DNA of 63,769 nt, counting the filler, from Hyphochytrium catenoides (lineage: Eukaryota; Protista; Hyphochytriomycota): assembly GCA_900088475.1 (NCBI GenBank). It is 11 parts of 11 records of this genome, joined end to end, with 100 filler letters (N's around TTAATTAATTAA, not from the genome) between each part and the next. Parts side by side here need not be neighbours in the genome. Positions count along the whole stretch, not along the records: positions 31,264 to 52,032 come from FLMG01001972.1; 10 more parts are not named here. One strand, 5' to 3'. Within the stretch, counting starts at the first letter, position 1. Each line of letters opens with the position of its first letter. Below, in pieces: positions 31,264-48,359 of the stretch. The translations under genes were made by a program, and so were the position numbers. The notes below the pieces were generated by a model. That model saw only the letters and a list, made by a program, of their open reading frames with translations. It was not told where the DNA came from and did no database searches.

Positions 31264-31938
31264 GCCATCAGCACCGACTATGAAGTCTGTCGTGATAGAA
31301 TTGCCATTGCTGAAATGCATGCGGTATTGACGGAGTCCGGAGCCTCGGTTCCTCTCCCGCTCCTCGCTTTCTCCTTCCATTGCTGTTTCCTTTGTCCTCA
31401 TGGGCGATGTCCCCTTTCCTTCTTCCTTGGCCTCCTGCGACGTTTCGTTAACTTCATCAGGTCCTGAAATGCTCACTAGCTTGTGGTCCCATTCTACTGT
31501 TCCGGGCAGTAAAGACTCGAGGAGAATCCTTTGCAAATCCGCGCGATCACTCTCAGGATTATATGCTTGTTCACAACCTTTTTCTTCTCCCTTGCTATGG
31601 TTTCTTTTCCCTTCTTCTTCTTCACTAGTTCTGTCGTCCCCGCCACCGCCAGCTTGCCAAAGACATTGAGCGTGTTTGCCATAGATACGCGTGTCGTCAC
31701 CTTCGAGGCGCGAGAGCCTGAGAAACTCCTCATAAAGTCCGGCTTTCCTCAAGACATCTTGTCCTGAATCTGCCTTGATATCAAGGCTTCCACCTTGTTG
31801 TCTGGCCGTAGGAGATGGGTCAGCCTCATAGATTTTCACCGAGCAGAACGCGTGATGGCGCTGAATGATGCGAGCGAGAGCGAGAGCAAGTCCGCCTGAG
31901 CCGACCCCCACTATGGCGATGTTGGGTCGTTCAATCAT
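31264..31938 (-). CDS. FAD-dependent monooxygenase, Tet(X)-like family (N-terminal half; truncated at the linker)
   Basis: IAIVGVGSGG Rossmann motif, ARQQGGSLDI, SGQDVLRKAGL, NPESDRADLQRILLESL, VEWDHKL, DFIVGADG. No introns in the visible part. Confidence 0.8.
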
Positions 31939-34636
31939 GCTCCCGTGGAGTTTCGCGTTGCAGTGAAAATCTCAAATGACGATGAGGAAACGTTTTGTAC
32001 ATGGATGGATAGTGCTACGTAGATGGTATAAATAAGACTAGGAAAGAGCTTTCAGAAGAGGCGCACCGCATCATACATCACAGAAGAATTCATCCAGGTA
32101 GCGACGGCCCGGTACGCTTGAGTGCGAGGACTATTGGCCCTTTATTATTGTTTGTTACTGATCATAGGGTCTTGGAAGAAGGTCTACTGCCCCGCCGTTG
32201 TGCCACAACATGCTACAGTCCCGGGTATAAGAGCAGCCTGGAGTGGTCCACTTCGCGTCCAAATTTGGAGCTGCGTTCAAACCCTCTTCTTCTTCTTCTT
32301 CGGGTCTCTTGTGGCCGAATAACCAGCAATAGAGAGAAGAACTTCACAGTCTAGAAACCTGGTGGTCGGTGATGATGGGCAACAACTCGACGATGCCTCA
32401 TGTCGTCTCCCACACAGTTCTTGTCCGTCTGTGGTGAACCAAAAAAAAACTAATAATGTCTACCCAACACGGAATAGGACTCGGAGGCCCTCTTGCTCAC
32501 AGTTGTACCATCGCCGCTTCTTCAGCCATCCTTTTTCTAAAGAAAACTCGAGAAGAAGGGAAGAGGTGGGCATCACTCAACAATCGAAACAGCATCGCTC
32601 ACGGTTGAGGGTCAGAGGAGCCACGTCGACCATAACGCCACAGTGCTCGCTTCAGTACCCCCCAACCCGCCCTGCAAGAATGTCGGAATGAAGAAGGTAG
32701 TAGTAGGCTTTTTTTATTTATCGCTGCAGACGAAATGACCAACACTCCTCTCAGTCCCGGCGGAGTGACCCCTGCCCTACAGAGTAGAGAGGGTTGTTCC
32801 CTCACCCACGATATATTGGGTGAAGGTTGGCTAGCAGAGGTGCGGACTTGGAACGAATCTCTGTCGACTGAATCTTCTTGAGATTCCACCAGTCCCCAAT
32901 CCAATCTATGCAATTTCAGAGACTGTCCTTCGTTCGCTCTTCCTCCAGATAAAATTGGCCACCACCACCTGACATCATGTCATTAACAAGACTACATTGT
33001 GATAAGATCCAAAGCCGAAACGAACCAAAACGCTTGTCGGCCCTTCCCCCACCAAATGCCGTCGTCCCTGTCGCCGCAAGTGCTCGTCGAGCGAACTTGC
33101 ATTCAATCACAGTCTAGAAAGCTGCTGCACAATGGCGGCACTGAAGAGCTTGAGGACAGGACTACTATTGGCAATTACTCCCACACCAGAGAATCTGGTG
33201 GTTGAAGTAGTAGTAGTACCACGAGTAGTCGCCGAGGAGATGCCGACGTTCGTCGTCCCAACCTTCTTTAAGATGGCATGTATATTATCATTGCTAGACA
33301 AAGGGTCAGCTGTCAAGCATAGGTGTGATGTTTCGTCGTTTGGGAAAGGTGGCCCTTCTATTTGGAAAAGAGCAAGGGGCGGGGGTCAACAATAAGAAGA
33401 TGTGATGATGATTGATGGTGATGAGTCGGTCGTGGGATGAGGAGGAGGAGGAGGAGGAGGAGGGAGAGGATGGTGGTCGCAGGGAGTATGGATGCAATGA
33501 TGTACATTGTTGACTGTTGGGAGAGAGGAGGTTCAATTTAGAGGTCCATCTATCCATCATCGTTGCTTAGTCGCTGGTCGGTGCACTAGAAGGAAGAAAC
33601 AGACGGATGGACATGTCGGATAGCTAGGTAGAGCGAGAATAAGGGGAACTACCGGGCTTTAGAAAGAAGGTTGAAAGGGTGATAGCGAGTGGTGAGGAGG
33701 CCAAACTATTGATGGAAATCCTCAAGGCTTCACCTGTGAAGCGAACCAACTTCAACTGGGGGAGACTCCGGACTCCATTTATCTAAAGAAAGTATAAACT
33801 GTAAGGCAATGGGTATGGGACAATCACCCCATTGGAAACGCGAATAGGTAGATGGTTTGTGAGTTTGTGAGGGTGAGTACCCGCGGCTACCTTGGGCAGT
33901 AACTCCAGTGTTCAAGAAGTGGAACGGATAGCCTCTAACGTACAGTACGCAAGAAGGTTTGTCCACACCTCTGTCATTTAGAATGAGGGGAACTGAATAA
34001 TAGCTTTCGTTTCAAAAATCTTGCAAACTCAAGGTCTAAAGGTGTTTTGTACAGTGCCGTAACAATGTTCAAAATTGCGAAGCCTTCAAGTCTAACGATT
34101 TTAAATATCATGCGTTTTTATCCAGGACGTCCTTGCAAGGGTCAGTTCTTCCCCATGACAGAGAAAAGGGAGTGGGAAAGAAAGAGTGGCTTGTCTGTTC
34201 AGGTTCTACTGTAGTAAGGAAGGGGCAGAGGGAGGAAACCATCACTGGCGCACAGAGGAGAAGAAAAGTGCGTTTCTGATCTGCGAACGATGTTTCGAGC
34301 GCCGGGCGCCGGGCGGCTTGCCCCTTGGCCAGAGGCGCGGCGGCAGCAAAGGCCAGACAGCTCCTCGGCTGGTGATGGATACAGGGCACTGCTGATAGAC
34401 GGCACTCAGGAAAGAAAGATTTTGCGCGCGTCTATGAAGATTTGAATTCGGGCGGGAGTGATAGAGACCAGAACCAAGACTACCTGCCCTCTCTCTGGCT
34501 GCCCAAGTATCGGGCTGGAGTTTGTTGGGAAGCGAATCATTTCGGCTCTGTGAAACTCTACAGGCTGCTTGAGGACGGTAGTAGCTCTCTGGTGAGGCAG
34601 CCCAGCGATAGAGCCGCTCCAATTGTGCTAAAGACT

Positions 34637-37600
34637 ATGTTTCGAGGAGCCGCCGCTTCTGGTCGGCTGAGAGCTGCGCAGCTTGCTCGAGGGAGCCCAG
34701 GACGAACCCTCCTCAGATCACGATTTACAGCCGTCCCCACAAGTTACAGAGCAGCAGGCAGACACAGACAAGAATTTGCAAACAAATTTATCACTGGCAG
34801 CAGGATGTTTCGTTCTACCGCTTACACCAACAACGCTGCGGCGTCCTCTACCTCTTATGAGTTTATTGATGACGAGTATTATGACGATGACGACTACGAT
34901 GATGAGGATGACTACAACTTCCCGGTAAGGCCATAATAGGATAGGCTTCTCTATTAGTTGCTGGAGCTGACCATGCTGAACGCAGCCCAATGGAGATGAG
35001 ACCAAGCGTACCTCATCTCCCGACTATCCGCCTCTTTTTGGCTCTAAGCCGGACACGAGACAGCGAGCTTTCAAGTTGTCGCCAAAGTTTATTTCGCAGG
35101 TCTGATAACTATTAGCTCCATTATTCTCCACTTATATAACCCATTTACGCTTACTTCTGACATCATCTCAGTTCAAAGAGAAGAAAGCCCCCTTTGGCTT
35201 CAATGGGCTGGGCGAGATGGTCTACCAAAGGACATATTCCCGGGTGAAACCGGATAACACAAAGGAGCAGTGGTGGGAGACCGTTGAGCGGGTGGTCAAT
35301 GGGACATACAACATGCAAAAGGAATGGATTGAGCAGCATGGCTTAGGTAAGAGAGGAAATGCCGGTACCATCTTCTTTCATGAAGGCGTTCTCTCACACG
35401 GCGGTGACATTGTACGATGAACAGGATGGAACCCTCGTAAAGCTCAACGTAGTGCAAAACAGATGTATAAGCGTATTTTTGAGATGAAGTTCCTTCCTCC
35501 CGGTCGAGGTCTATGGGCCATGGGGTCGCCAATTACCGAAGAGAAGGTAACATAGGTGCATGCTACTTTTTGAGAACTTTGAGCTAACAATAGTTTGCGG
35601 GCAGCGGTTATATGCCGCACTGAACAACTGTGCCTTTGTCAGTACGGAAGACATCTCGAAAGGATCTCCCGCACAGCCCTTTTGCTTTCTAATGGATGCT
35701 GCAATGCTTGGCGTCGGTGTGGGGTTCGACACAAAGGTTTGTCCTTGCTGCATGTGTCCGTCGTTACAGTGGCTCTTGAGCATAAACTTGCGGCTAACAG
35801 TCCCGCCGGATGCCTTGTTCCACCAGGGTGCAGGCAAGATTACGGTCAAGGGCTTTGACGAGAGCAAAAAGACTGAGATGTACACCATCAAAGATTCTAG
35901 AGAGGGCTGGGTAGAATCTGTACGTCTTCTTCTAGACGGGTTGCTACTACGGACAGCGCCTGTAGAGTTTGATTATTCAGAAATCCGGCCAGCAGGAGAA
36001 CCGATCAAGGGCTTTGGGGGTGTCAGTGCTGGACCAGAGACGTTGGAGAAACTGCATAAGGCAAGTTTGAGGTAACTATCCCTGTCGTTATGTGCTAACG
36101 CCTTTTCACCTATCGATTAGGACATTCTGGGCGTACTCAATCCTCTTATCGGTTCTCCCATAACCGTCACAGCCATTGTAGATATCATGAATTTGGTAGG
36201 TGAACTGAACTGAATGCCCTCCTCAACTCTCCCTATCTGCTTATTAGAGCTTCTACGACCTTCGTTTGTCTCATAACCATCAGATTGGCGTCTGTGTCGT
36301 CGCTGGAAACGTGAGAAGAACAGCGGAGATTGCCTTCGGTGACCCATCCGACTCTGAATATGTGGATCTGAAGAACTACGAAGCAAATCCAGGACGCGTG
36401 GCTCACGGCTGGACGAGCAACAATAGCGTTTTCGCTCAACTCGGTAAGGAACTGTAGATTCATTATCTCCTTTCTGCCAGTCAGTGACCTTCGCCTTTGC
36501 CCGTTAATGCGTTTCAGGCATGAACTACGGACCTGTCTGCGAGCGTATCATAAAGAACGGGGAGCCTGGGTTCGCGTGGCTGCAAAACATGCAGGAGTAC
36601 AGTCGGATGGACGGGGAAAGGGATGGCAAGGATAAAAGAGCCCAAGGAGGGAATCCATGTCTTGAGCAGGTTAGAGCTCGATCACTTTTATCTCTCTTCG
36701 TTTCCTTCCGTTGGTGAGATTTGTTTAACTTTTGCCATCCTCTGAGCTATTCGCACTCACTCTATTTTTGCGACAATGTATTCCTGAAGACGCTGGAGTC
36801 ATATGAGCTCTGTTGTCTCGTGGAGACCCTTCCCAACAACCATACAGATCTCAATGATTATCTCAAGACCTTAAAGTAAGTTCCAACTTCATCTGCGTCG
36901 CGCTGCTTCCCATTGCGAGGGCTTACTCGGTGAACTCTTCCTCTCACTGACGCGCAATCTCTCAACCTCCGCAGATACGCCTTCCTCTATGCCAAAACCG
37001 TTACGCTAGGCAAAACGCACTGGCCTCTTACAAATCGCGTGATGCTGAGAAACCGCAGAATCGGATGCAGTATGTCTGGGCTCGCTCAGTTTGTGGGCTC
37101 AAGGGTTAGTTGCCACTCTTTATCCCTTCCTGGACGCAAAAAAGCATTAGAGTTAAGTGACACGGCGCAGGGGTTGCACGAGCTTAAGGTATGGTGTGAA
37201 GAGGGGTACCGAGCCATCCAGCAGTACGACAAGCAGATGTCCGACTGGCTTGTCATTCCTCGTTCAATCAAGACTACGTGCATTAAACCAAGGTAGGGCT
37301 TACTGGCGGTAGTCCAGGCTATTGGTGACGCAAGCGTCTAACTGTACGTTCGTTTCTGAACATCTTAGTGGCACAGTATCACTCCTAGCGGGCGCTACGC
37401 CTGGCATGCACTATCCAGAAGGTCGATACTATATCCGGCGAGTACGACTTGACCACAAGTCGGAGTTAGTGCCAGCTCTGAGAGCGGTAAGGGTACAATA
37501 TACCTCTTTTCTGATGGCCCGGATACCTTCCGTGGCTTTTGCACACCGGGACGGCGGCCAGTGTCAAACTCTTCGCCCCTCGTGTTTGTTGCTCTTTTGT

Positions 37601-38541
37601 CTGGGAGTCGCTAAGAGTGAAAGCTGACAGTGGTAATGCTTCCAAGGCAAACTATCCAGTGGAAGAGTCAGTAGTCGATCCGTCCACTCTCGTTGTATCT
37701 ATCCCGGTAGATGTTGGGCCCGGTATCCGTACTGCTAAAGAGATGTCCATGTGGGAGCAGCTCTCCTTCGCCGCTTTTCTTCAGCGCTACTGGGCAGACA
37801 ACCAGGTATTTGCATAGCTTCCATCATAAATCATAGGACGCACTTACTATAACTTCGCACGTCCTCTCACTGGGCAGGTTAGCTGCACTGTCACCTTTGA
37901 TCCGGTAACCGAAGGGCCCCAGCTGAAACATGCGCTTGACTTCTTCCAGTACCAGTTGAAGGTATTTATTTATTTGCCTTCTGTGTCTCAGCTCTAGCTT
38001 GGGGTGGTCCTTTCCGCGTGATCTCTCTCACGTGGAGCCTTATGCCTCTGCTGAGCCGCCTCCGCGCTGGTCTGTTCTGTTATTGTGGACGTTCTGCCAC
38101 GGATACTCCTTCGGCTCTAACAGACCGTATTTGCTATCTGAAGGGGATCAGTTTCTTACCCCGAATGGACCTTGGGGCATACCCTCAAATGCCCTATGAG
38201 GAAATTACTGAGGAGCAGTACAATGAGATGGTGGGATGTACCGTTCTGAGCAAGGCGGCAAAGGTTCCGTACTTACTCATTCCTTCCTCCATGATTTGAA
38301 TCTTCAGAAGTCGAAGCTTGGAGAGCTAAACCTCTCGCACCTCGTCTCAACCAGGATGACCACAGGTAGGTTGCGTACTGACCCTGCCCTCTTGTCGAGT
38401 CTGATTGCCTGCTGCTCCTCGATCGCAGATGTGCCTGATAAATTCTGCGAGGCCGACCAGTGCGAGTTTGTCCCTGAGGTCAAGGTCCCCAGCACTTTTG
38501 AAGACGATGGTCCAGTACCTCCTACTACTGGCGCCATCTAA
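34637..38541 (+). CDS. nrdJ: Class II adenosylcobalamin-dependent ribonucleotide reductase (monomeric RTPR-type NrdJ), 18 exons, 802 aa, with N-terminal presequence
   Basis: Exons 34637-34924, 34986-35099, 35172-35346, 35425-35546, 35605-35736, 35827-36060, 36121-36195, 36284-36443, 36518-36669, 36790-36875, 36975-37104, 37171-37292, 37369-37486, 37647-37805, 37878-37961, 38144-38230, 38308-38365, 38429-38541 sum to 2409 nt in one open frame. Motifs: [58 protein letters not shown]-terminal CEADQC. Confidence 0.95.
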
Positions 38542-38752
38542 AGCCCTGAAGTACGGATGTGCAAGAACGAGACGCTTTTATATTTAATTTGACTACATAG
38601 CTAGCCGCCTAATGTAATGAATAGGCAGCTCTTTAACGCCACGTTAAGGTCTTCTTTGCTTTTCAATCTCTGTCCAGCTTCTCCTCACGGTGTCTTTTTG
38701 CCCAAACGTTCTTCTCTATGTTAGCCGCATTCTTCTCACCTCCAACTATAGC

Positions 38753-40345
38753 TCACTGCTGCTGCAGCTGCTGCTGTACTCGTCTGATGGCGGCATCCCA
38801 TCCGTGAGCTCCATAGTCTGTATCAGAAAAGTGATAGTTTCTAGTCGGCGTACAAATGTCAAACGTGTGCTGATTTTTCATCTGGACATGGAGGGAAGGT
38901 GACCAGGGTACCTCACCCTTCTTCTTCATTGTCTGGGGGTCGATGTACACTAGACGTGGCGTTGATGTCAGTAGTAGCTGTCGCTTCTTCGAGAACAACC
39001 CTCGCCTCTTACTAACCAGATTACTAAACAGAATGCACTCGTTTGGAAGCAGGAACTGGTTCCACACAGAGTCAGAGGATTGACCAGATAGCCCATTACC
39101 GCTGAGGCCATTCGCAGGGAAGTCCTGCTGCTGTTGGGGAAGGAAGAGGCGCTGCACTTGTGGATCACTGGGCAAGTGCTCGGCATCCTGCCACTGACGC
39201 TGTACAGGCACCGGTCGCCGGTGGGGAGAGCGATTGGGCACTCCTTCCTCGAGCATCTGCCGAGGAGATAAGCTCCCTCTGTCGTCAATCAGCTCAGTCG
39301 CCAGACCGGCATACATCCAATCATCCCGCGCACCATCAGCATTGGGCTCTGGCAGTGGCTTCAGCCTAGGTTGATACGGACTTTCGGCCTGCAGCAGCTT
39401 GTCCCACTGAATGCCTTCAAAAAATGGATGGGCCATAAGAGCTGGATAGTCATTGGCGTCATTATTACCGGCTCCCAGTCGGGAGGCGGCGTCTTGGACG
39501 AGTAATCTAGAGATAAGATCCTGTGCTTCAGGCGGGATGGTGGTAGGGTATGTGAAGCCCGCAGCAGGGTGCTCGAGAATCATCTGAAAAGTCAGGTACT
39601 CGCTCTCACCTCTAAACAGTGGTCGGCCTACCAGCATCTGGTAGATCATACACCCTACCGCCCATAGATCGCAAGCCTTCCCCACCTCGCCGTCTTTTAG
39701 CACTTCAGGAGACACATACTCAGCCGTACCGACAAAAGTATTACTTCTTCCGTCTTTCTCAATCTTAGCAGTGCCAAAGTCGGCTAACTTGATGTGTCCT
39801 TTGTCTGTCAACAAGATGTTTTCTGGCTTGAGATCCCTGTGGATGATACCGCGCGAGTGAAGGAATCTGAGTGCCAATACTACCTCTGCTATAAAGAATT
39901 TTGTGACAGTGATGGAGCAGGCGCTATCTGGGATGCCAGCCCTTGACTGTATGTCTCGGTACTTCATGATAACATCAAGCAGCTCTCCACCTCGACAGAG
40001 CTCCATCACGAAATAAAGATAGGAGCGATCTCTAAAGGTATAGTGCAGCTTGATGACCAAGGGATGCGTGATCATTGACAGGACGTTCTTTTCCATCATC
40101 ACGAACTTCACCTTGTTCTCCTTCCTAATGAATCTTTGCTCAATAATCTTCACCGCGAACTCTGCGTTCGTGCCCTTCCTCTTCGCATGCACGACACGCG
40201 CGTAAGCTCCTTCTCCTAGAGTGACTCCGAACATAAAGTCTGCAGGCGAGAGCTTTTTGCGTCCGCTCTCCGAGGACGTTTCCTGTTGACCTGCTCTCCC
40301 ATTCGTAAGGCCTGAGCGTCCGTTAATTGAGTGCTCGGAAGTCAT
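38753..40345 (-). CDS. PDPK1: 3-phosphoinositide-dependent protein kinase 1 (AGC kinase plus C-terminal PH domain), intronless
   Basis: GEGAYA, HRDLKPEN, DFGTAK, activation loop RSNTFVGTAEYVSPE, EYLTFQ; PH-type KRRGLFSKKRQLLLT..PRLVYIDP..KKGEVPW. Confidence 0.92.
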   Translation of the reverse strand: MTSEHSINGRSGLTNGRAGQQETSSESGRKKLSPADFMFGVTLGEGAYARVVHAKRKGTNAEFAVKIIEQRFIRKENKVKFVMMEKNVLSMITHPLVIKLHYTFRDRSYLYFVMELCRGGELLDVIMKYRDIQSRAGIPDSACSITVTKFFIAEVVLALRFLHSRGIIHRDLKPENILLTDKGHIKLADFGTAKIEKDGRSNTFVGTAEYVSPEVLKDGEVGKACDLWAVGCMIYQMLVGRPLFRGESEYLTFQMILEHPAAGFTYPTTIPPEAQDLISRLLVQDAASRLGAGNNDANDYPALMAHPFFEGIQWDKLLQAESPYQPRLKPLPEPNADGARDDWMYAGLATELIDDRGSLSPRQMLEEGVPNRSPHRRPVPVQRQWQDAEHLPSDPQVQRLFLPQQQQDFPANGLSGNGLSGQSSDSVWNQFLLPNECILFSNLVSKRRGLFSKKRQLLLTSTPRLVYIDPQTMKKKGEVPWSPSLHVQMKNQHTFDICTPTRNYHFSDTDYGAHGWDAAIRRVQQQLQQQ

Positions 40346-42442: not shown

Positions 42443-43627
42443 TTATGGGCAAACCACGTTGTTCTCTGGATCAAAGCCAGCTAGCTTGGCAGCCTTGCAC
42501 ACGTTCACGAGACCGTTGCCAAAGCTGTCATCGCGGCCAGGGGTACCGAGATCCTCAGCAGTGGCCTCAAGAGCTTGGCGTACGTCCTGGTTAGTCCAAT
42601 CATTGGGCAGACCGTAACTCCACACCACAGCAGCCGCGCCCACGACATGAGGACAAGCCATGGAAGTGCCGGACAGCTCTCTGAAGCCATTGTTCCGGAA
42701 GGCGCTGTAAACGTTGACACCTGGAGCTGCGATATCCACTTCCCTGTTCCTCTGCGAGAAAGAAGCAAGCCCCTTGCGAGAGTCAATGGCAGCCACTGAC
42801 ATGACAGACGGATAGGATGCCGGGTATGAAAAGCGGGTGTTGCCAGAGTTGCCCGCGGCAGCAATGCTCAAGACACCACTCTGGTTGAGACGCGCAAAGC
42901 CCTGTTCCTCAGCCGTTGAGGAGAGAGATCCTCCAAGAGACATATTGATGATAATCTTAGCTCCTTTGGCAGCTTTGACACAAAGCTGCGTGGCTGCTAA
43001 GATATCAGAGGCGAAAGAGTACTGGCATGAAGTCCCGTCGAAAACCTTCACGTTGTACACGAAGACTCCTGGTGCCACGCCAAAGCCTCCCTTAGCTGCA
43101 ATGGTGCCAGTGACGTGAGTTCCGTGGCCACAAGTGTCAGGAGAAAAGTCTGGCTCGCCCTCAAGTCCAGCAGAGACGAGGCCAGGATGATCTTGTTGCG
43201 CTCCTGAATCGATGACACATACCATCAATTCATCCCTAGTGACATTAGCGAGCGGAGTAACATCCGCGCCAACCATTTTAAGGCCGTAAGTAGGCAGAGA
43301 CTGTAAATGGCGTCCCCGGAAGGCGTTGAATTCCTCTACGGTTGGGATGACTGAGCGAACAACGTCTTTTTCCATATGTGAGACCCAAGGCTGGCTCATG
43401 ACCTTGTCGAGAGCCAAGGTGTCGCTAACCTCAACGGCCATAGCGTCAATGAGCTCGAGCTCATGAACAAGCTTCACGTTTTCGGCTAACTCGAAGAACC
43501 TCATCACCTCTGGATCTACCGTTAGGCCGGCTTTTGGGTAGACAATGTAACGCAGAGGCTCGGAAGCCCTGACAAGGGCACAGGCAGCTGCCAGCAAACC
43601 TGAGGTAAGCGCAACAGTAAGCTTCAT
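42443..43627 (-). CDS. Secreted subtilisin-like serine protease (S8A) with signal peptide and I9-type propeptide, intronless
   Basis: Signal peptide MKLTVALTSGLLAAACALVRA (ATG 43627). Catalytic motifs VIDSG, HGTHVTG and GTSMACP; oxyanion AAGN. Confidence 0.92.
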   Translation of the reverse strand: MKLTVALTSGLLAAACALVRASEPLRYIVYPKAGLTVDPEVMRFFELAENVKLVHELELIDAMAVEVSDTLALDKVMSQPWVSHMEKDVVRSVIPTVEEFNAFRGRHLQSLPTYGLKMVGADVTPLANVTRDELMVCVIDSGAQQDHPGLVSAGLEGEPDFSPDTCGHGTHVTGTIAAKGGFGVAPGVFVYNVKVFDGTSCQYSFASDILAATQLCVKAAKGAKIIINMSLGGSLSSTAEEQGFARLNQSGVLSIAAAGNSGNTRFSYPASYPSVMSVAAIDSRKGLASFSQRNREVDIAAPGVNVYSAFRNNGFRELSGTSMACPHVVGAAAVVWSYGLPNDWTNQDVRQALEATAEDLGTPGRDDSFGNGLVNVCKAAKLAGFDPENNVVCP

Positions 43628-46532: not shown

Positions 46533-48359
46533 TTAATGCAGCCGCAGTGATTCGGAGCTCTGGCAATGGAGTGGAAGATGGGACCTCAGAAATGCAACCA
46601 CAATCTCTTCCATAGCGCTACTTTTGCCAGCAGCAGCAGATAGTTCTCCAGGAGGAGCTTGAGCGCGTGCCCTGCCATCCAGTCTGACACACTCTTTTGG
46701 CCCTAGATATGCTCTTGCCAGTCGCTCCGTGTCCTCCGGCGCAACGATCAACGACTCGTCACGGATGATAAAAAGTGCTGGGAGCTCCCCTCCCAGATCC
46801 TTCACCGCGGCCACATTGTCCATGCGCTTCAAGTCGCAACCGGTGTCCTTCCTTTTTACTTCGCGGCAGAAAATGTCCAGCCCCAGAGTCAGGGCCATTT
46901 GGGGAATGAAGGGCTTGCCATTTGCGACGGTGGGCATTTCTTTTGTTGGAGTCGAGGGTGACTGAAAATCACTCTCCATCCGCCGTGCCAAGTGAATCGA
47001 CGCTGATGCGAAGCTGCTGAAAGGGCTGTCAAGAATCAAAGCCAACACCTCGATCTCATTATTATCCGTCTCTTGTTGCTGATCTTTGTCCCCAAGCCTT
47101 CTCCCCTGCCGCCCGCTGTCTCTGCTGGAATCACCTGGCAAAGTCTCCGTAACCTTCTCGGTGATGCTGGACTGCGGTGTTATCGGCCTCGAGGAACTGT
47201 GGGGGTGAATGCTCTCTGGAGACGTCTTCCTCCTTCGCCATCTATTTGGACCACTGAGAGGCCTCTTGTGGGAATCATCCTCTTCTCCTGGTTGGCCTTC
47301 GCTGTGAGGCGCAACCTTCAACCAGGCGAAGAAGCCATTGCTCAGTCCACTGAGTAATCCTGGACCTGCCTCCTTTCTTCTCCTTTGCAACCCGGCTGCA
47401 TAGCGAATAGCTGCTACAGCTCCAAAATCACTTCCAAGTAGTATCACGCGTTTGACCCCGAAACGTGCATGCAATTCCTGCAGAACGCAGGCCACATCTT
47501 CGGCTTCCTTCTCTCCGTAGGAGCAAAACGAGCCTTCAGACTGACCATGGCAGCGGAAGTCGAAGGCTGCATATGTGAGGCCGCTAGCGGCAGCGATAGG
47601 GAGAAATGGGAGAGCTTGAGTTAGGCTACCTCCTAATCCTTCAAATGTAGGTTCACTGATTCCGTGGCAAAAGAGAAGGCAAGTGCTGGAGAACTCTGAA
47701 GGGACGTCTGAAGTCTTTCCTCCTTCATTAGGGCCACTAAGGTCAAGGGTCTCCCAGTATGCTGCTTCTTCCTCCTGTGACTGAGCTTTAGAGCTTTCCA
47801 AGACATCTGTCTGCTGCCGAGCGGTAAAAGAAGAAGCAGAGACAAAAGAGGACAGTGACAGAGAAGAGGAGGTAGTGGAAAGCGTCGACAGAGAGATGGT
47901 CCTAGAGTTCACATCCTCGGCACTAGTCAAACTAGAAGCCGTAGGAAGGCATTGGTTCTCTTGAGAGCACAAGCACGGCCGCCATATGTATCCTTGCAAC
48001 TTGAAACCTTCCTCTGTCCTTGCCTCGAAGAGCTCCCTAGAGTAACGCATCACGGAAGGCAAAGGACCGACATAAAAAAAGGCAACTATTAGGTGATAAG
48101 TCTATATCGCCGGCCTTCGCGCCTTCTTGAGAAGCTACCTTTTATAGTTTAGCGTTATCTGCTTAGGGTCTTCTGAACTGAAGACCGCGATAGCGGAACC
48201 CAGGTCTTTCTCCGTATAAAGCTGACGTTGAGGCTGAAGTACGGCGTCTGCATATAGTCGATACGCGGTTGAGAGGAGTGACCTCCAGCTGATGTCATTC
48301 TTCCCGGTCAGCACGCTGTCAAGACTCTGTTCCAGCTCACCATCAGCAAAGATCTCCAT
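46533..48359 (-). CDS. Alpha/beta-fold hydrolase (YqkD/ABHD13-like) with a degenerate catalytic triad; 2 exons
   Basis: Exon 1 48359-48139 (AVLQPQRQLYTEKDLG) joins exon 2 48036-46533 in phase 2. Motifs LLFCHG, AFDFRCHGQSEG..SYGEKEAEDV, ILLGSDFGA, LILDSPFSS. Confidence 0.75.

Follow-up and report, generated by a model that had tools for sequence, protein, structure and literature searches.

In the textbook view, eukaryotic mitochondria obtain deoxynucleoside triphosphates (dNTPs) by import or salvage. In animal mitochondria, the dNTPs for mitochondrial DNA (mtDNA) synthesis outside S phase are provided by salvage kinases and import, and reports of a class I ribonucleotide reductase (RNR) in the organelle are disputed. 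A monomeric class II RNR (NrdJ) was reportedly described from Euglena gracilis by Torrents and co-workers in 2006. Here, we analyzed a gene for an enzyme of this type in a 63,769-nucleotide stretch of DNA, filler included, from Hyphochytrium catenoides (NCBI GenBank assembly GCA_900088475.1). We refer to this whole stretch as the window, and the NrdJ gene lies in the part of it (positions 31,264 to 52,032) that comes from record FLMG01001972.1. Because its relatives share the same N-terminal design, and because the Acanthamoeba orthologue was found in purified mitochondria, we consider it fairly probable that the H. catenoides NrdJ is a mitochondrial enzyme, which would probably make dNTPs inside the organelle. 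Animal mitochondria have the same need for dNTPs, but meet it by salvage and transport, with no dedicated matrix reductase and no B12.

The prototype of the monomeric class II RNRs is RTPR of Lactobacillus leichmannii (PDB entry 1L1L). It has the same RNR_Alpha domain, insertion domain mimicking the dimer interface, and barrel core as the H. catenoides protein, together with the same catalytic residues C119, N406, C408, E410, and C419 and the C-terminal CX4C pair. RTPR is a bacterial protein, its gene has no introns, and it lacks an N-terminal extension, whereas the H. catenoides protein carries ∼124 extra residues and is far nearer to a eukaryotic clade (65–70% identity) than to RTPR. Monomeric class II RNRs of Phytophthora, Dictyostelium discoideum, and E. 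gracilis have been attributed to bacterial transfer, and in Phytophthora and Dictyostelium NrdJ coexists with a class I enzyme (PMC3019208, PMC3605638, PMC8085122). The sequence-only reading of this locus had proposed that the gene implies a B12 requirement; this does not follow, because class I RNR has reportedly been retained in the oomycetes and in other eukaryotes that carry NrdJ (PMC8085122, PMC3019208). The role of the Dictyostelium enzyme has been termed enigmatic, with hypoxia tolerance as the proposed function and no location stated (Crona et al. 2013, PMC3605638). Location or targeting is likewise not addressed by Lundin et al. 2010 or by Orlowska et al. 2021, who dealt with B12 use in early fungi and oomycetes.

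The closest precedent comes from proteomics. According to the entries of Table S2 in Gawryluk et al. 2014, the N series comprises nuclear-encoded proteins detected through tandem mass spectrometry (MS/MS) in purified mitochondria of Acanthamoeba castellanii, and entry N296 is the NrdJ of this amoeba. The RNAseq-verified N terminus given there begins upstream of the GenBank start, at an upstream Met that we also found (see below), and the entry carries a MitoProt score of 0.8184 and a TargetP score of 0.754 (reliability class 3). Two other entries of the same MS-identified set are cobalamin adenosyltransferase (N486) and methylmalonyl-CoA epimerase (N350). A mitochondrial NrdJ is therefore already on record in that table, and the H. 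catenoides case is not new in kind, although the sequence-only reading knew of no characterized example. Full-text literature searches returned no paper connecting the Acanthamoeba mitochondrial proteome with the work on eukaryotic class II RNRs. For Euglena, Andalucia, and (in a 2026 study) Acanthamoeba, the main text of the mitochondrial proteome paper makes no mention of the enzyme, and the RNR papers that we searched do not discuss how far the mitochondrial-type pattern spreads.

To judge from its sequence, the product of the H. catenoides gene is a monomeric class II, adenosylcobalamin (AdoCbl)-dependent RNR of the NrdJ/RTPR type (feature coordinates are collected in Table 1). The insertion domain, which replaces the dimer interface and separates monomeric from dimeric NrdJ proteins, is present, and exon 6 aligns to residues 146–277 of 1L1L. 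In the PDB, the exon 5–6 piece matched only 1L1L, and P0428, a 70% identical orthologue, aligned to the same structure with an E value of 9.5e-94. Exon 9 aligns to 1L1L residues 362–410, with E410 as its last residue. We mapped the catalytic residues one by one to 1L1L through P0428 and then by motif identity in the H. catenoides protein, and all of the cysteines named in the sequence-only reading (NNC, NPCLEQ, ELCC, and CX4C) were located as claimed. The CX4C pair was equated with C731/C736 by pattern and position, as exon 18 alone gave no match in the PDB (nor did exon 10 alone); across a 70-sequence alignment, one cysteine of the pair is invariant and the other is present in at least 90% of the rows. 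Because every catalytic residue is in place, the enzyme looks fully functional, with AdoCbl-dependent reduction of ribonucleoside triphosphates (NTPs) as its predicted activity.

The gene model was reconstructed both manually and by script. It bears out the earlier count of 17 spliceosomal introns and an 802-residue frame and reveals an intact, intron-rich nuclear gene. The introns measure 58–182 nt, 16 of the 17 are of the GT-AG type and one is GC-AG, and phases 0, 1, and 2 are represented 12, 3, and 2 times, respectively. An alignment with five homologues, including three that are single open reading frames (ORFs) on genomic contigs, shows no gap at any of the 16 splice junctions in the core, indicating that the model is correct in detail within the core. 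Outside the core, in the variable N-terminal part, junction 1 preserves the distance from the acidic block to the D[FY].PLF motif that relatives show. The ATG at 34637 is the first in-frame ATG downstream of the preceding stop.

The N-terminal extension is the part of the protein that bears on its location. We counted 124 residues upstream of the core motif FKLSPKF, close to the ∼120 given in the sequence-only reading. Its description of the first ∼44 residues as rich in Arg, Ala, and Ser and free of acidic residues also holds: the first acidic residue is Glu-46, and residues 1–45 contain 10 Arg. Given the composition of the core, the absence of Asp or Glu from 45 residues has a chance probability of 0.003, and at least 10 Arg in 44 residues one of 7e-5. 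Residues 1–45 thus show the composition taken here to mark a presequence, namely 20–60 N-terminal residues rich in Arg, Ala, Leu, Ser, and Thr without Asp or Glu. A Ser/Thr/Ala-rich link connects this basic start to an acidic Asp/Tyr-rich block, and in exon 2 a second, basic link joins the DYPPLF motif to the core.

Homologues were collected using the stop-free exon 5–intron 5–exon 6 piece as the query and then the homologues found with it; the H. catenoides protein itself was absent among the matches listed. The nearest relatives (Aphanomyces stellatus, Aphanomyces invadans, P0442, P0435, and P0412) are 65–70% identical and arrange their N termini in the same order, with a basic acid-free start, a DDDY.DED-type block, a D-F-[IP]-P-L-F motif, a Lys/Arg-rich link, and the core. 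The acidic block and the D[FY][IP]PLF motif are limited to the H. catenoides gene and the saprolegnian-type orthologues (P0428, P0447, P0417, P0442, P0435, and P0412). In an AF2 model of the A. stellatus orthologue, residues 1–78 are disordered (pLDDT <50) and the core is well defined (pLDDT >90); the acidic block and the DFIPLF motif are not docked on the core in this model. The basic start of the relatives spans 36–57 residues whose sequence is not conserved. It resembles a targeting peptide, because its position and composition are conserved and its sequence is not.

The two Aphanomyces proteins are the closest named orthologues (68–70% identity) and belong to the clade sister to the H. catenoides gene. 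They are annotated as hypothetical protein or reductase, their basic segments are shorter than that of H. catenoides, and we found no study of their location. The A. invadans gene has 10 introns compared with 17 here, and its whole extension lies in exon 1. The basic start, the acidic block, and the start of the core are thereby contained within one exon without an internal Met, so that translation of the conserved acidic block in A. invadans would entail translation of the basic start.

We then asked how common such starts are, using a fixed rule of a Met start with no Asp or Glu and at least three Arg or Lys in the first 25 residues. Among NrdJ sequences with an extension of at least 25 residues, 27 of 83 passed (22 of 67 clusters after collapse at 80% identity), compared with 2 of 115 PDK1 kinases from similar taxa, which served as the cytosolic control (Fisher's exact test, p = 7e-10 for 27/83 versus 2/115). 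All of the qualifying sequences placed in the tree fall in one starred eukaryote-type clade of 54 rows, which includes stramenopiles, Amoebozoa (Filamoeba), and several further branches, and no sequence in the prokaryote-like sister groups of the tree passed. Diphylleia rotans also passes, its listed sequence being too short for the tree set. Transcript-derived sequences of Filamoeba (MMETSP) and Diphylleia (EukProt) encode starts of this kind. This survey of eukaryotic NrdJ N termini with a phylogeny, which the sequence-only reading had called for, suggests an old presequence within the eukaryotic NrdJ clade, with later loss in lines such as Phytophthora.

Two apparent exceptions are probable annotation errors. 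The A. castellanii protein (XP_004354021) belongs to the same eukaryotic clade, with a core 65% identical to that of H. catenoides, and has an acid-free basic extension, which the GenBank model omits. In its gene (GCA_000313135.1, KB007831.1), the reading frame extends upstream of the GenBank start (locus position 1501) for another 167 open codons, in which there are two Mets with basic sequence free of acidic residues after them. The GenBank start is too far downstream. The amoebozoan gene differs from ours in its 10 introns, none of which occupies an intron position of the H. catenoides gene, and its product lacks the acidic Asp/Tyr block and DYPPLF. In [Pythium] brassicae (GCA_008271595.1), 181 codons are open upstream of the annotated start (locus position 1201), and this frame encodes an MLSRA...RR start with ∼44 Arg-rich, acid-free residues; the annotated protein is probably too short, but the GC-rich genome weakens the open-frame evidence.

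Taken with the Aphanomyces layout and the Acanthamoeba MS/MS identification, the recurrence across the clade strengthens the earlier proposal that the H. catenoides NrdJ is directed to mitochondria. A retargeting specific to this organism seems less likely, as the tree suggests a wider and older presequence.

Several observations limit or weigh against the case for a mitochondrial location. The Eisenberg helical moment at 100° peaks at a modest 0.29–0.43 in 18-residue windows. Processing motifs are weakly matched, with several Arg-at-minus-2 candidates (for example after Phe-30 and Ala-39) and one R-10-type candidate from Arg-23, and such short cleavage patterns are common. There are 74 residues ahead of the acidic block in H. 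catenoides, compared with 36–57 in relatives. Proteomes of purified mitochondria include some contaminants, and the TargetP prediction for N296 is of reliability class 3. A run search for RNA evidence at the locus returned DNA runs and one rhizosphere metagenome contig only, with no spliced joints seen. Finally, the Phytophthora orthologues start with MAPTTS... and ∼50 non-basic residues, and Phytophthora capsici has no upstream open frame with a basic start, indicating that the location differs between lineages.

These last orthologues, together with P0149, a Dictyostelium-like sequence (species guessed from composition) without any extension, are what would be expected if NrdJ were a cytosolic enzyme. 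The H. catenoides protein could then start at Met-57, with transcription beginning downstream of 34637, or its basic N terminus could be a disordered extension without a targeting function, and the enzyme would act as an O2-independent back-up for class I RNR, as suggested for Dictyostelium, in which hypoxia tolerance is the role proposed by Crona et al. 2013 (PMC3605638). Met-57 is in frame and its context is as good as that of Met-1 (A at −3), no further ATG separates the two, and a three-frame coding score barely separates the frames over codons 1–56 (0.29, 0.23, and 0.09). An acid-free, Arg-rich stretch such as residues 1–45 is nevertheless unlikely by chance, the same composition recurs at the same place in the nearest orthologues, among them that of A. 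invadans with no second Met to start from, and the Acanthamoeba entry places an orthologue in mitochondria. We regard a purely cytosolic enzyme as unlikely.

The two in-frame ATGs also raise the question of whether one gene serves two locations, with the Met-1 form being mitochondrial and the Met-57 form reaching the cytosol through leaky scanning or a second transcription start. The ATGs are 168 nt apart with no intervening ATG in any frame, where ∼2.6 would be expected, and both forms begin with Met-Phe-Arg. A Met just before the acidic block is also present in P0435, A. stellatus, and Aphanomyces euteiches, in which the gene model starts there. About half of the sequences would, however, have an internal Met there by chance, and A. 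invadans and P0412 lack it; we consider dual targeting rather improbable.

The third alternative concerns the 5′ end of the gene. The exon 1 frame remains open for 87 codons upstream of Met-1 (34376–34636) without an ATG, and this stretch is coding-like in the exon 1 frame only (0.28 per codon, compared with −0.15 and −0.40 in the other frames). An unseen upstream exon is thus possible, which is a further point against the proposed start; if such an exon joined the open frame before 34637, the true N terminus would be different. Hundreds of in-frame GT-AG joins from upstream ATGs are formally possible, but they have weak donors, and no candidate is supported by homology. The relatives begin directly with the basic segment, and an open stretch of 87 codons arises by chance in ∼1.5% of cases, which is unusual but possible. 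An incomplete 5′ end seems very unlikely to us. Upstream of Met-1 there is also a short ORF in another frame, which would be relevant to translation only if the mRNA begins upstream of it. Its start, MFRAPGAGRL, resembles that of the main ORF, with DNA similarity over 13 nt only; 54 of 1000 shuffles reached the same DNA score, and the resemblance is probably due to chance. An oomycete-type initiator-like heptamer at 34537 was also discarded as evidence, because 17 such heptamers occur in 20.8 kb.

For H. catenoides, we infer from sequence the use of Met-1, import, cleavage, activity, and physiological role of a mitochondrial NrdJ as follows. Translation would most likely start at the ATG at 34637, and the first 30–70 residues would act as a cleavable mitochondrial presequence. 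The protein would be imported into the matrix via the presequence pathway, followed by removal of the first few dozen residues, and the mature form would keep the flexible acidic block and the DYPPLF motif. In the matrix, cobalamin adenosyltransferase would supply the AdoCbl with which the enzyme would reduce NTPs directly to dNTPs. Electrons from a mitochondrial thioredoxin-type reductant would restore the CX4C tail, and the tail would then restore the active-site pair to its reduced state. Synthesis of mtDNA would thereby gain an O2-independent source of dNTPs that is also independent of the cell cycle-controlled class I RNR. A matrix reductase working with NTPs, local AdoCbl, and mitochondrial thioredoxin would amount to a self-contained source of dNTPs for mtDNA.

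A broader reading, which we put forward tentatively and think somewhat less probable than not, is that monomeric NrdJ has worked in the mitochondrial matrix throughout the eukaryotic clade ever since the clade arose. In that case, NTPs would be converted with local AdoCbl into the dNTPs for mtDNA inside the organelles of stramenopiles, Amoebozoa, Diphylleia, and some early-branching fungi, with no dependence on oxygen or on cytosolic class I RNR, and the presequence would have been lost later, for example in Phytophthora. If true for the whole clade, the enigma that RNR specialists see in the role of these enzymes would be solved, and in many protists the maintenance of mtDNA would be tied to the supply of B12. 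The H. catenoides gene adds a further case, which is clean in having 17 introns and having descended vertically along with the oomycete genes, and the comparison with relatives shows that the design is widespread. It also joins two literatures without mutual citation in the texts searched, namely the Acanthamoeba mitochondrial proteome of 2014 and studies of how RNRs evolved and how fungi use B12, and flags the annotated starts of Acanthamoeba (GenBank) and [Pythium] brassicae as probably too short. Major pathogens of plants and fish belong to the oomycetes, so that a B12-dependent step of DNA precursor supply in the organelle would be of interest as basic biology.

The phylogeny points to a long residence of the gene. 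In the NrdJ tree, the H. catenoides protein is sister (support 98, starred) to an oomycete clade of Aphanomyces, Achlya, Pythium, Globisporangium, and Phytophthora, followed, as the next sister group, by Cafeteria and further sequences of stramenopile type. As the gene tree here agrees with that of the species, NrdJ was inherited vertically along with the oomycete genes and has long been resident, for which the 17 introns speak as well. This position in the tree and the neighboring PDK1-type kinase (see below) both indicate an origin next to the oomycetes, in agreement with a hyphochytrid. Intron 10 (36876–36974, phase 2, before residue 513) occupies the same alignment column and phase as an A. 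invadans intron, where ∼0.09 coincidences are expected by chance. Two further introns lie 1 and 5 nt away from A. invadans introns, and one A. invadans intron is common to Acanthamoeba. Introns are absent from the oomycete-side relatives on genomic contigs (P0154, P0442, and P0435) and from Coemansia.

Logan contigs of the DNA runs contained two haplotypes of the region 34000–39000 of the window. Their divergence reaches ∼7% over 220 nt (36813–37032, spanning intron 10), with 15 substitutions and 2 indels, and is much lower in the exons. The rhizosphere metagenome fragment matches 37195–37581 with one mismatch.

Among the other homologues, metagenomic NrdJ proteins of ∼660 amino acids without an extension (P0203, P0233, and similar sequences) are 66–67% identical to the H. 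catenoides protein, as near as most of its eukaryotic relatives. This group adjoins the eukaryotic clade and may include the donor lineage of the transfer. Many longer homologues (∼1000 amino acids or more; P0016, P0040, P0405, P0443, P0446, and others) break the alignment just after the catalytic NPC (residue 482) or near residue 240, and several of them (e.g. P0405, P0443, and P0446) contain intein and LAGLIDADG Pfam domains; from these break points, the inteins adjoin the catalytic cysteines.

Table 1. Features of the NrdJ locus and its surroundings; positions count along the window
Feature	Position	Strand	Details
NrdJ coding region, ATG 34637 to TAA 38539-38541	34637-38541	+	18 exons, 17 introns, 2409-nt coding sequence, 802 amino acids
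NrdJ exons 1-6	34637-34924, 34986-35099, 35172-35346, 35425-35546, 35605-35736, 35827-36060	+	
NrdJ exons 7-12	36121-36195, 36284-36443, 36518-36669, 36790-36875, 36975-37104, 37171-37292	+	
NrdJ exons 13-18	37369-37486, 37647-37805, 37878-37961, 38144-38230, 38308-38365, 38429-38541	+	
Intron 6, sole GC-AG intron	36061-36120	+	Usual donor, AAG/GCAAGT
Presequence-like N terminus, residues 1-44	34637-34768	+	10 Arg, 9 Ala, 7 Ser/Thr, 4 Leu, 0 Asp/Glu
Second in-frame ATG (Met-57)	34805-34807	+	Possible alternative start
Acidic Asp/Tyr-rich block, residues 75-93	34859-34915	+	13 Asp/Glu and 4 Tyr in 19 residues; matches DDDY.DED block of Aphanomyces, P0442, P0435, P0412
DYPPLF motif, residues 109-114, exon 2	35022-35039	+	Aligned with D-F-[IP]-P-L-F of nearest relatives
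Core start FKLSPKF, residues 125-131	35070-35090	+	Prokaryote-like homologues begin 1-4 residues earlier
RNR_Alpha domain (PF17975), exons 3-4	35172-35546	+	Pfam, E values 4e-24 and 4e-12
Insertion domain specific to monomeric class II RNR (PF21995), exon 6	35827-36060	+	Pfam, E value 4e-11
NNC, residues 240-242	35623-35631	+	Cys242 = C119 of L. leichmannii RTPR (active-site redox pair)
NPCLEQ, residues 479-484	36652-36669	+	Asn479, Cys481, Glu483 = N406, C408 (thiyl radical), E410
ELCC, residues 490-493	36805-36816	+	Cys492 = C419, partner of C119
CEADQC (C-terminal CX4C), Cys772/Cys777	38446-38463	+	Tail cysteines taking electrons from thioredoxin
Upstream ORF	34290-34445	+	51 codons, other frame than NrdJ
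ORF cut by edge of the piece	31264-31938	-	N-terminal dinucleotide-binding-like motif, no Pfam match
(GAG)n microsatellite	~33440		In G-rich intergenic stretch
PDK1-type kinase with PH domain	38756-40345	-	Intron-less
Secreted subtilase (S8)	42446-43627	-	
Alpha/beta-hydrolase-fold protein	46536-48062	-	

Of the neighboring genes, the PDK1-type kinase was compared further. An exact look-up of its ORF found no record, and the encoded protein shares 49–55% identity with the kinases across all oomycete orders, compared with ∼42% for other stramenopile kinases.

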